Below, piece by piece: positions 34,225 to 62,857 of a stretch of 64,000 nt of DNA. Under the pieces are notes generated by a model, which was not told the origin of the DNA, searched no databases, and saw nothing but the letters and a program-made list of their open reading frames with translations. The stretch lies in assembly GCA_964199315.1 (NCBI GenBank), contig OZ116698.1:23746001-23810000 (forward strand), in the 5' to 3' direction. Position 1 is the stretch's first letter, and every line of letters begins with the position of its first letter. Origin of the DNA: Orbicella franksi. Taxonomy: Eukaryota. The translations under genes and the position numbers were made by a program.

Positions 34225-34413
34225 ATGTGCAGCAAAAATTTCCTTGTTTGCATGCTTGTTCTACATGTAGCCAGTTTGCAAGGGAAAGTTGTCCAGGAGA
34301 AAGTACTGCAACTGATTCACTTGACAAAATGTATTTACGAATACGAAGTGACTGTGTACACAGCGAGAGGCGCTAAGTCTACTCTTAGCGACGGTTACCA
34401 AGTCCATGCTTTG
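34225..34413 (+). CDS. Variable first exon B5 (nearest to gene B constant region)
   Basis: MCSKNFLVCMLVLHVASLQG...HAL; 189 nt, phase-0 donor. Confidence 0.85.
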
Positions 34414-35280
34414 GTAAGGTACAGTTCAGTTACTCTACGTACAAAAATAGCCAATGCAAGTTTTCTGTTTACTGACGATATCTCGCACGAGTCATGTTCC
34501 GGCGAGTTTCAAAAACCGTCGGATGAAAATCTGGAAGTGGTCCTGTTAAAAGAGTTTATACATACCAGCTAGTCTGGAAGCTTTCCTAGGGTGCATGAAG
34601 TTGTCACTTCTTATTTACAAAAATCGCTGTTTTTCATTTTCTTCGCTTTATTTTTGTGGTGATCAAAGCTATAGGATTGTTTCAGCCTCTAACACTTGTT
34701 CATAATCTGTATTTGTGATCAGAACGGACAACGAGCCAAGTTTGTTTAGTTTTTCAAATCTTGATTGCTCACTGTTCCACCATTTGGCCATTGTTTTTGG
34801 ATGTAAGTTCGTTTGTGTGTATGCATCTGAGCTTAATAACATGACTACGCTTATTGTTATTGTTGCTATTTCATTCTGCCAGTGTGTAGAATTCGTTCGA
34901 GCTTAGCATTCTATATATAAATGTTATTTTGTAATGGAATTGTCGCCGTGCACATGCAGCCATTGCTTTGTTTTAAGCTTCAGTGCCAAGAAACTTCTTG
35001 GCTTCTCCAAAACATGGGTGGTTACTTTGTTCTTTCCTCTAGAAACGTTTTAAAACTTTTTGGGGTAACGCAGTTGCAAATGTACAGTAAAATAGAACAT
35101 CCTTTTAATTTCTGCGATGATCATTCTTCACTCTCATCTACAACCGCAGTTCATATATGAATTATTTCATATAAACTTCACATCATTTCACTCCTCACGG
35201 GAAGATATGAACTCAATTAGTTGACCTCGCTCCCAATGTGTGGCTTCATAGCTCAGTTGGTAGAGCATCGCACCGGTAAC

Positions 35281-62300: not shown

Positions 62301-62857
62301 TTTTCGTAACTACGGTTGTCTTTGATGAGGGTAACATTCGTTGCAGGATTACCCTCGGATTTTACCTCAAGTTGATCTATAAAATTTAGTTGTTATTTCA
62401 ATCTAGTGTACAACGACGACGGTGTGTTAGAGGTTTCCCGTACAAGACAAGTCACTAAACTAGAAATTCCAGTTCGCCGAGCTAAAGGTGCCCTTGGTGA
62501 CGTCACAGTGCACTGGTCTCTCTATCAGAACGAGTCATCGCGAGTGGAACTGCTATGGCCGTCATCCGGGAAAGTAACTTTGTCAGATGGACAGTGGAAT
62601 GATTCTTTTATCGTCAGCGTGGACAACGAGGAAGAAGCGCCAGAGAGCGTGGTCTGGGTCCAACTGGATAAGACAACAGGTGGTGCCGTGCTAGCGTCAC
62701 GTGATCAAACCACAGCTAAGATTTTGATCGCTGGTAACGAGAGGTCTGGTACGAGCTGGATATGGATTGTGACTGGTGTCTGTTCAGGCTCGCTGTTCAT
62801 TTTGTTAGTTGTGGTTCTTGTGTGGTGGGTGAGGAGAAAGTGGCAAAAGTCAGAAAG
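34225..62857 (+). CDS. Gene B, spliced model using first exon B5 (3' end outside window): >=6,720-aa LLT/vitellogenin-N domain + FN3-like repeats + Calx-beta + TM protein
   Basis: Twelve exons join in frame through GT-AG junctions: 34225-34413, 37655-37904, 38487-50549, 51001-52622, 53409-54042, 54462-55001, 55536-55725, 56326-59671, 60063-60566, 60820-61037, 61500-61654, 62407-62857 (20,162 nt). Last visible exon ends in a phase-2 donor. Confidence 0.85.
35112..35433 (+). repeat. tRNA-containing repeat (251-bp unit plus ~71-bp direct repeat) inserted in cassette 5 intron
   Basis: 35112-35182 is repeated at 35363-35433 around a tRNA-like sequence; absent at the homologous site of cassettes 2 and 3. 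Confidence 0.75.
35242..35314 (+). tRNA. tRNA-Thr(GGT)-like sequence, probably repeat-derived
   Basis: GGCTTCA acceptor stem pairs with TGAAGCC; intact A box and TTCGAAT T-loop; anticodon GGT; anticodon stem has a mismatch. Confidence 0.5.
35611..35905. repeat. 60-bp minisatellite, ~5 copies
   Basis: caaacgc(g/a)caatatagtgcctcggtggttcacccctacaccttttctcgtataaatagct repeats with period 60. Confidence 0.95.
37655..37904 (+). CDS. Gene B exon 2 (first constant exon), LLT/vitellogenin-N beta region; absent from ORF track
   Basis: Acceptor aaattttcacacag; VDVIPSLRDY...LSKPFYFQQEEHGPVTEVLYPKDTESPEIAAFKK|GIAGAFQLNL resembles the LLTP pattern L..PF.F....G.V..V...D....N.KRGI.S.LQ. Phase 0-1 bridges B1-B5 to exon 3. 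Confidence 0.88.
38487..50549 (+). CDS. Gene B exon 3, single 12,063-nt exon: LLT domain, helical region, propeller-like region, FN3-like repeats
   Basis: ORF 38369..50557 (4062 aa); acceptor tattgtatggtgacag, donor G/gtatgt; EHDDSG motif resembles the E.D.SG motif of vitellogenin-N. Confidence 0.93.
51001..52622 (+). CDS. Gene B exon 4 (FN3-like repeats, RRRR site)
   Basis: Acceptor tatgttacag, donor AAG/gtaact, phase 1-0. Confidence 0.9.
53409..54042 (+). CDS. Gene B exon 5 (FN3-like)
   Basis: Phase 0-1, within ORF 53394..54065. Confidence 0.85.
54462..55001 (+). CDS. Gene B exon 6 (FN3-like)
   Basis: Phase 1-1, 540 nt, donor G/gtatga. Confidence 0.85.
55227..55570 (+). repeat. 172-bp tandem duplication spanning the gene B exon 7 splice acceptor
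   Basis: 55227-55398 is nearly identical to 55399-55570; both contain tttctcttacag/gattggaccttgagagc. Confidence 0.92.
55536..55725 (+). CDS. Gene B exon 7 (FN3-like)
   Basis: Acceptor tttctcttacag, donor AG/gtactg, phase 1-2. A duplicate acceptor lies 172 bp upstream. Confidence 0.8.
56326..59671 (+). CDS. Gene B exon 8 (FN3-like, FG-GAP-like, Cys-rich CxxC module)
   Basis: Acceptor ttttttttcgcag, donor CAG/gtaaca, phase 2-0; contains ORF 56516..59737. Confidence 0.9.
60063..60566 (+). CDS. Gene B exon 9
   Basis: 504 nt phase 0-0; SDPESAVTSYEVAWGT FN3-like motif. Confidence 0.85.
60820..61037 (+). CDS. Gene B exon 10
   Basis: Acceptor ctttccatcccgcag, donor TG/gtaggt, phase 0-2. Confidence 0.82.
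61145..61330 (+). mobile_element. SINE-like interspersed repeat fragment
   Basis: gtgggttgatttt...gagggtttttctctggattttcccgttttcc block resembles metazoan SINE central domains; recognised from memory, not searched. Confidence 0.35.
61500..61654 (+). CDS. Gene B exon 11, GPS-like VCHLTQF motif
   Basis: Phase 2-1, donor C/gtaagt. Confidence 0.82.
62407..62857 (+). CDS. Gene B exon 12: Calx-beta domain + transmembrane helix + basic stop-transfer
   Basis: VRRAKGALGDVTVHW...SGKVTLSDGQ...VQLDKTTGGAVL matches the Calx-beta pattern; WIWIVTGVCSGSLFILLVVVLVWWV followed by RRKWQK. Confidence 0.85.

Follow-up and report, generated by a model that had tools for sequence, protein, structure and literature searches.

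A vitellogenin-type head on a giant, membrane-anchored fibronectin type III stalk in the coral Orbicella franksi

We analysed a 64,000-nucleotide stretch of the Orbicella franksi genome (assembly GCA_964199315.1, contig OZ116698.1, positions 23,746,001 to 23,810,000; hereafter the window) and describe in it a gene for a giant type-I membrane glycoprotein that carries the head module of the large lipid transfer proteins (LLTPs). From its N-terminus the protein consists of a signal peptide, a Vitellogenin_N-type head, an amphipathic β/α region, a β-rich domain, 28 fibronectin type III (FN3)-like repeats, a β-propeller, distal FN3-like repeats, a domain with the motif CHLTQF (the CHLTQF domain), a Calx-beta domain, a transmembrane (TM) helix and a tail with an NPxY motif. 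We put the probability that this is one real gene, encoding a protein with that domain order, at about 0.9. The protein is a member of an ancient, unstudied animal family.

The gene lies on the forward strand, where tblastn searches with the Montipora RefSeq protein P0014 (6,916 residues) and the Nematostella protein P0023 (6,840 residues) gave 12 colinear blocks. Exon borders were set by a splice-site search guided by P0014. The resulting model starts at the ATG at 34225 and runs through 12 exons to 62857, each bounded by GT-AG and in frame, and encodes 6,721 residues with zero internal stops, matching the open gene of at least 6,720 residues proposed by an initial annotation of the window made from the sequence alone. 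The N-terminus, MCSKNFLVCMLVLHVASLQG, is signal-peptide-like over residues 1–20 when read by eye from the sequence, as had also been noted there. In global alignments the protein is 70% identical to its Montipora counterpart, 56% to Nematostella XP_001634336.3 and 41% to that of Dendronephthya, with all internal gaps at or below 24 residues, and its best protein matches are scleractinian (ENA coral predictions, 93%; Montipora capricornis, 72%).

That the lipid-transfer part and the TM part are two adjacent genes over-read into one is extremely improbable. What speaks for such an artefact are the junctions of exons 3–8, which rest on homology, and the five alternative first exons (described below), which leave the 5′ end ambiguous; indeed all of the exon 1–8 junctions are supported by homology and not by reads, which counts against our model. 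However, the largest forward-strand stop-to-stop frame, 4,063 residues long (38366–50554) with smaller open pieces on either side, holds the head together with 17 FN3 repeats in one uninterrupted exon, every junction is GT-AG and keeps the frame, RNA joins exons 8–12, three other species have full-length models colinear with it, and a matching exon of 4,040–4,050 residues is found in two other paralogues of this coral. We therefore rejected gene fusion on the grounds of the single open frame, the RNA-joined exons and the colinear orthologues; a division into separate genes, the alternative named in the initial annotation, was not what we found.

RNA data were aligned to 59001–64000, as contigs from two runs and raw reads from two runs. 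The junctions 59671>60063, 60566>60820, 61037>61500 and 61654>62407 each occur in contigs of two runs and in 3–13 raw reads of run X23. Eighteen reads pass the donor at 62857/8 into sequence 149 nucleotides beyond the window end (position 149 of the downstream sequence L013). Further tail exons lie at about 1447–1608 and 2297–2539 of L013, and end in a conserved tail (...METSF...NPVY...), with NPVY in the last exon; at least three tail exons are present past the window end. These spliced exons, just downstream of the window, carry the gene past 64 kb, an extension already suggested by the initial annotation, and because reads splice onward to them the whole protein is put at about 6,900 residues, of which 6,721 are encoded inside the window. 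The initial 4 kb of exon 3 (head and helices) is present in 14 RNA runs, and several of these contain the 3′ end as well; runs with the sequence carry the label coral metagenome or metatranscriptome. In run X1 contigs continue through the donor at 62857 (62829–63671) with exon-like depth and reach a stop at 62859, ten residues past the TM helix; this read-through and the splicing in X23 may represent a short-tail/long-tail isoform pair. As a separate observation, 61172–61338 and 63510–64000 (intron and downstream sequence) show RNA contig depths of 1,000–2,600 and opposite-strand joints; they appear to derive from an abundant transcribed repeat and not to belong to the gene.

The head is a true Vitellogenin_N module, composed of barrel and solenoid. 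The motifs YEYEVTV, LSKPFYF and EHDDSG are all located in it. Pfam Vitellogenin_N (PF01347) matched exon 3 alone, a query without the first 146 residues of the protein, with 22.8 bits (E = 4.2e-5, profile positions 112–548 of 590, cut-off 24 bits) and the Nematostella orthologue with 42.1 bits, and PF01347 is a precomputed annotation on many homologues. A family profile of 25 sequences (A1) aligned in hhalign with 99.6% probability (E = 4.6e-24) to three proteins that score 40–90 bits on Vitellogenin_N. Against this identity, a sequence-profile search of the PDB with the head alignment returned designed HEAT/alphaRep proteins only, and a fold search was therefore needed. AlphaFold2, run on the first 1,150 residues of the Montipora orthologue in place of the Orbicella protein, predicted a barrel of 12 strands with a single helix inside (residues 39–284; predicted local distance difference test score, pLDDT, 60–80) followed by a 17-helix solenoid (residues 336–647, pLDDT 85–93). 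The top eight Foldseek matches of this model in the PDB were all LLTPs and included MTP 6i7s (1.3e-13), lipovitellin 1lsh (2.1e-12), MTP 8eoj and apoB100 9bd1 (4e-9), with bee vitellogenin (9enr and 9ens) and apoB100 9e9r as further top entries. VIA-align gave MTP a Z-score of 15.6 for 503 residues over model residues 35–645, the sole listed row covering both subdomains; the other rows were mostly generic helical repeats. The vitellogenin-like region first read from sequence motifs is thus borne out by profile and fold, and the model matches both of the proteins named for comparison at the time, lipovitellin and MTP.

The very long FN3 stalk and its single C-terminal TM anchor, both part of the initial annotation, are supported by a repeat hidden Markov model (HMM) and by hydropathy, respectively. 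The HMM, which we built from the repeats themselves, found the 28 contiguous copies and two to three distal ones (residues 6075–6367), in line with the 27–30 or so counted earlier; Pfam fn3 scores 52.3 bits (cut-off 25), and AlphaFold2 shows β-sandwiches. The TM helix (residues 6691–6709) is the sole strongly hydrophobic segment. A single C-terminal TM helix recurs in cnidarian, hemichordate, starfish and sponge homologues, and NPx[YF] tails are found in those of Nematostella, Oculina, Dendronephthya, Ptychodera, Patiria and Corticium.

The C-terminal part was modelled with AlphaFold2 on 1,191 residues of the Montipora orthologue (P0014:5540-6730), and the model includes the TM helix. Between the FN3 array and the distal repeats it contains a confident β-propeller; a Pfam scan (E ≤ 1) of residues 5500–6100 gave nothing credible. 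The CHLTQF domain, of about 170 residues, ends in two strands that kink at an invariant V-C-H-L-T-Q-F, and the C, H, L and T of CHLT do not vary across 14 homologues, the most distant of them 27% identical. It has no credible Pfam (E ≤ 1) or PDB sequence match. Its W..W..C..CHL[ST] layout is in the register of the GPS motif of ADGRV1 (VLGR1), a giant adhesion G-protein-coupled receptor (GPCR), but hhalign against the ADGRV1 GAIN-B/GPS region gave a probability of only 0.1%; autoproteolysis at CHLT is therefore a lead only. The Calx-beta domain, called by the initial annotation, proved right in substance: BLASTP with 62409–62750 aligns it to more than ten ADGRV1 repeats (E 9e-9 to 1e-4, 28–36% identity) and AlphaFold2 predicts a β-sandwich, although Pfam Calx-beta (PF03160) stays below the gathering score in the Nematostella orthologue (E = 0.19, 12 bits) and gives no match in the window piece.

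Set against known LLTPs (vitellogenin/lipovitellin, apoB, apolipophorin II/I and MTP), the coral protein shares the N-terminal barrel around a helix and the 17-helix solenoid that follows it (best matches 6i7s, 1lsh, 9bd1 and 9enr). Like insect vitellogenins, in which a convertase cuts near the boundary of barrel and helical domain, it has a multibasic convertase site in the barrel–solenoid loop; apolipophorin II/I is also cleaved. It differs from the LLTPs in having no detectable C, A and B cavity sheets, DUF1943, DUF1081 or VWD, and in that its head is followed by helices, FN3 repeats, propeller(s), a Calx-beta domain, a TM anchor and an NPxY tail. To our knowledge, all characterised LLTPs (vitellogenin, apoB, apolipophorin and MTP) are soluble; the initial annotation's statement that they are without TM anchors agrees with established knowledge, and we found no paper on a membrane-anchored one.

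Two other giant proteins offer comparisons. ADGRV1 is of comparable size (about 6,200–6,300 residues), the membrane-proximal domain of the coral protein aligns to many of its Calx-beta repeats, and the W..W..C..CHL[ST] motif near the membrane is common to both. The coral protein has one Calx-beta domain and one TM helix, however, against about 35 and seven in ADGRV1, and homology of the CHLTQF domain with the ADGRV1 GAIN domain is without statistical support; in the coral protein Calx-beta lies between this domain and the membrane. In architecture the coral protein also resembles usherin (USH2A) and similar FN3-rich giant type-I proteins. Usherin crosses the membrane once, combines some 30 FN3 repeats with a separate N-terminal head and a short tail for signalling, and serves as a model of long fibrous links. 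Its head is laminin-type and that of the coral protein is Vitellogenin_N.

The sequence behind the head bears on what the protein may do. Residues 650–1000 are conserved, and such a region recurs behind HEAT-like domains in proteins of unrelated length in a library of 1.84 billion proteins. The Phe/Leu/Pro-rich stretch that had been placed near 40740–41110 maps to residues 900–1000 (40745–41047) and contains the two most amphipathic β segments of the 6,721 residues (907–919 and 979–991); the β moment exceeds 0.9 in 6% of post-helical windows versus 0% in the FN3 array. Because these strongest amphipathic strands occupy the position of the LLTP cavity sheets, a divergent lipid-facing sheet at residues 650–1000 is possible. 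The helical-looking sequence, earlier given as about 1,000 residues, extends over residues ~650–1790 (about 1,100 residues) by AlphaFold2 and periodicity. In the corresponding helical region a distant homologue of about 6,000 residues (P0101, from an ENA contig) has weak matches to Apolipoprotein A1/A4/E and ApoLp-III. The β-rich domain at residues 1800–2350 gave nothing credible in Pfam (E ≤ 1) and a weak propeller hint in a phmmer search of the PDB (E = 0.24); ESM Atlas feature searches with residues 650–1000 and 1800–2350 scored 0.75–0.76, under the useful level.

While the architecture is secure, the function is something that we infer. The reading we favour, and hold tentatively, is that of a surface receptor whose hydrophobic-ligand-binding head stands on a stalk of about 100 nm and is coupled through NPxY to adaptors. 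The FN3 stalk, about 100 nm long if extended, would hold the head far off the cell surface, where head, amphipathic β strands and amphipathic helices would bind a hydrophobic ligand (a lipid or a lipoprotein-like particle). Proprotein convertases would cut the conserved basic sites on either side of the helical domain, much as vitellogenins and apolipophorin II/I are processed, and through its NPxY tail the protein would be linked to PTB-domain adaptors, to be either endocytosed or anchored. Indirect support for a hydrophobic ligand comes from the strongest amphipathic β strands lying at the LLTP cavity-sheet position with amphipathic helices behind them. A pattern-recognition role, which the initial annotation had offered beside lipid binding, is not favoured, as the vitellogenin domains implicated in it (DUF1943 and VWD) have no Pfam match.

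Several results weigh against a lipid-binding receptor. Of the LLTP parts, barrel and solenoid alone could be demonstrated. Neither the exon pieces of the window nor the Nematostella orthologue has a Pfam match to DUF1943, DUF1081 or VWD at E ≤ 0.1. AlphaFold2 predicts no sheets past the solenoid, with low-confidence coil and helix (pLDDT 25–50) over the next ~220 residues, which leaves a lipid cavity hypothetical; the hhalign and VIA alignments to LLTPs likewise end with the helical domain. The apolipoprotein-like matches of P0101 are far under their cut-offs, and cleavage at the basic sites and at CHLT is a prediction from sequence motifs.

These gaps lend weight to a structural role, which we consider nearly as likely as the receptor: the head may have lost lipid handling and become a protein-binding tip, the whole forming, by analogy with usherin and ADGRV1, fibrous links of about 100 nm between membranes, cilia or microvilli, or to the matrix. 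The tip might, for example, dimerise or dock to an LDLR-family β-propeller in the manner of the apoB and vitellogenin barrels. The ectodomain consists mostly of adhesion-type modules (31 FN3 repeats, a propeller like those of ROS1/Sevenless and integrin α, and an ADGRV1-like Calx-beta domain), the cavity-forming LLTP domains were not detected, the complex of an apoB barrel with the LDLR propeller (9bd8) is among the Foldseek matches, and integrin β subunits also have NPxY tails. On the other hand, the most amphipathic β strands stand right behind the solenoid and are followed by amphipathic helices, all of them needless in a pure spacer.

The basic sites raise a further possibility, which we regard as unlikely: a furin-type cut after residue 640 could free a soluble Vitellogenin_N fragment of about 70 kDa, making the working LLTP-like protein a secreted one, and leave the anchored remainder as a separate receptor or adhesion molecule. 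Two conserved multibasic sites do flank the helical domain, and convertase cleavage is known for vitellogenins and apolipophorin II/I. There is no Cys in residues 650–900 to tie the head covalently to the remainder, so a head cut at residue 640 would be either held non-covalently or released. Cleaved LLTP fragments usually remain associated, however, and the head-plus-stalk layout is conserved from sponge to starfish, which suggests that the parts work together. The coordinates of the gene, its domains and the neighbouring exons are collected in Table 1.

Table 1 Exons, domains, putative processing sites and upstream exons, in window positions
Feature	Position (nt)	Residues	Strand	Basis and remarks
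Exon 1	34225..34413		+	Start codon, signal-peptide-like residues 1–20, first LLTP β-barrel strand (YEYEVTV); GTAAGG donor; tblastn to P0014 residues 28–68
Exon 2	37655..37904		+	Part of LLTP β-barrel (LSKPFYF); tblastn, 64% identity to P0014 residues 63–161; in-frame AG/GT sites
Exon 3	38487..50549		+	12,063 nt stop-free; remaining LLTP head, helical region, β-rich domain, first ~17 FN3-like repeats; 71% identity to P0014 residues 151–4175
Exon 4	51001..52622		+	FN3 repeats; tblastn and splice-site search
Exon 5	53409..54042		+	FN3 repeats; tblastn and splice-site search
Exon 6	54462..55001		+	FN3 repeats; tblastn and splice-site search
Exon 7	55536..55725		+	tblastn and splice-site search
Exon 8	56326..59671		+	Final FN3 repeats of array, Cys-rich segment, β-propeller, distal FN3 repeats; donor 59671 RNA-confirmed
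Exon 9	60063..60566		+	Last FN3 repeat and start of CHLTQF domain; RNA junctions both sides
Exon 10	60820..61037		+	RNA junctions
Exon 11	61500..61654		+	VCHLTQF motif (residue 6545); RNA junctions both sides
Exon 12	62407..62857		+	Calx-beta-like domain 62418–62747, TM helix 62757–62828, start of cytoplasmic tail; donor AG/GT 62857/8
LLTP N-sheet β-barrel	34327..38902	~35–285 (exons 1–3)	+	AlphaFold2, Foldseek, VIA-align
Furin-like site RRSKR/S in barrel–solenoid loop	38903..38917	286–290	+	Motif scan; RSKRS conserved in alignment A1; low-pLDDT loop
LLTP α-helical solenoid, 17 helices	39035..39931	~330–628	+	AlphaFold2; Pfam Vitellogenin_N and HEAT_2; hhalign
Double furin-like site RKRR...RRKR	39932..39967	629–640	+	Motif scan; basic residues near-invariant in A1
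Post-helical conserved region, including Phe/Leu/Pro-rich stretch	39995..41047	650–1000	+	β-moment scan; low AlphaFold2 confidence
Amphipathic helical region	41045..43417	~1000–1790	+	AlphaFold2 helices to model end; hydrophobic periodicity 3.5–3.6, raised helical moment
β-rich domain, Cys/Trp-rich amphipathic end	43445..45097	1800–2350	+	Read from sequence; end conserved in Ptychodera
28 FN3-like repeats	45107..57373	2354–5512 (exons 3–8)	+	HMM built from the repeats, copies at E 1e-12 to 1e-36; period ~108 residues
β-propeller	57725..58927	~5630–6030	+	AlphaFold2, pLDDT 80–90; Foldseek top matches ROS1/Sevenless and integrin α ectodomains, ~5e-13
Exon 1 copy, distal	17060..17263		+	More divergent, intact; possible alternative first exon
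Exon 1 copy	20779..20967		+	Intact; tblastn
Exon 1 copy	24389..24577		+	Intact; tblastn
Exon 1 copy	31718..31906		+	Intact; tblastn
Thrombospondin type-1 (TSP1) exons	16200–16766, 18890–19276, 23486–23902, 30754–31224, 33063–33473		-	One per exon 1 copy

Homologues that combine the head with an FN3 stalk occur in Hexacorallia, Octocorallia, the sponges Oscarella and Corticium (both homoscleromorph), the hemichordate Ptychodera and the starfish Patiria. The Oscarella protein XP_065846792.1 aligns over the head (residues 27–854, E = 7e-43), and Corticium XP_062508999.1, whose annotated model is without the N-terminus, over the post-solenoid region (residues 560–837) and the C-terminal module. 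Orthologues are colinear over their full length in Nematostella (XP_001634336.3), Montipora (XP_068740821.1) and Dendronephthya (XP_028399178.1). In databases the homologues are named only ‘uncharacterized’ or ‘FN3 domain-containing’, and literature searches by architecture and by homologue accession or LOC id, with supplementary tables outside the search, found no description of the family. A study of lipid transport in Nematostella covers only the single Vtg and apoB orthologues (10.1101/2022.01.24.477498).

Outside the family, the nearest sequence relatives of the head identified in the search of 1.84 billion proteins include P0205 (Archangium WP_329729805.1), P0177 and P0147, at least one of them myxobacterial, which score 40–90 bits on Vitellogenin_N. 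Such bacterial Vitellogenin_N/HEAT proteins share with the coral head the barrel motif E.D.SGI(F/Y) and the 99.6% hhalign probability, but they are only about 830–1,015 residues long and a Pfam scan found no stalk domains in them. The first 150 matches listed, of which a part was examined, were mostly generic HEAT-repeat proteins; none was identified as a canonical animal LLTP, though such proteins may be present among them. Giant proteins of 4,800–7,900 residues with Ala/Gly/Pro-rich tails were also seen on ENA/Logan contigs of 28–93 kb (P0070-P0076, P0081 and P0084). They share the C-terminal module (FN3 pair and CHLTQF domain) at about 30% identity with the motif invariant, P0072 additionally shares the post-solenoid region, and their source may be a protist.

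Upstream of the gene, the first exon is repeated. Its five intact copies (17060, 20779, 24389, 31718 and 34225) have an identical donor and encode nearly identical mature N-termini, while exon 2 is present as a single copy in the window (37655), which makes the copies alternative first exons or else relics of duplication. They form five head-to-head cassettes (16200–34413), in each of which the forward-strand exon 1 copy is paired with an open minus-strand TSP1 exon, and a run of 147 N (28902–29048) lies inside this array. A neighbouring giant gene occupies 690–8285 on the minus strand with a 1,880-residue open exon of FN3-like repeats, which are closest to the final FN3 pair of the gene described above; no LLTP head was found for it, and the upstream TSP1 exons probably belong to it. 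Three paralogues lie within 250 kb on the same chromosome. About 150 kb before the window begins, the chromosome arm carries a canonical Vitellogenin_N gene (C1:23590948-23596603; exon matches up to 60 bits), and three more canonical loci are on contig C14 at 19.89, 20.71 and 22.40 Mb.

The favoured receptor reading can be carried one step further, to a view that is quite improbable at present: the family could be a fourth, membrane-tethered branch of the LLTPs, in sponges, anthozoans and ambulacrarians, that works as a self-contained capture-and-internalise lipid shuttle. Head and amphipathic segments would load lipid at the stalk tip in the manner of apoB or apolipophorin, and the NPxY tail would internalise the cargo. 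If true, this would place a lipoprotein and its receptor on one polypeptide, possibly echoing lipid transport before circulating lipoproteins.

A family that is conserved from sponges to echinoderms and mounts an LLTP-type head on a giant anchored stalk broadens the range of uses known for the Vitellogenin_N fold. It provides a testable candidate for the capture of lipids or particles, or for cell-surface links over long distances, in animals that have no circulatory system, among them reef corals, whose lipid traffic with their symbionts is poorly understood. The orthologue in Nematostella, a tractable model, makes its function directly testable.

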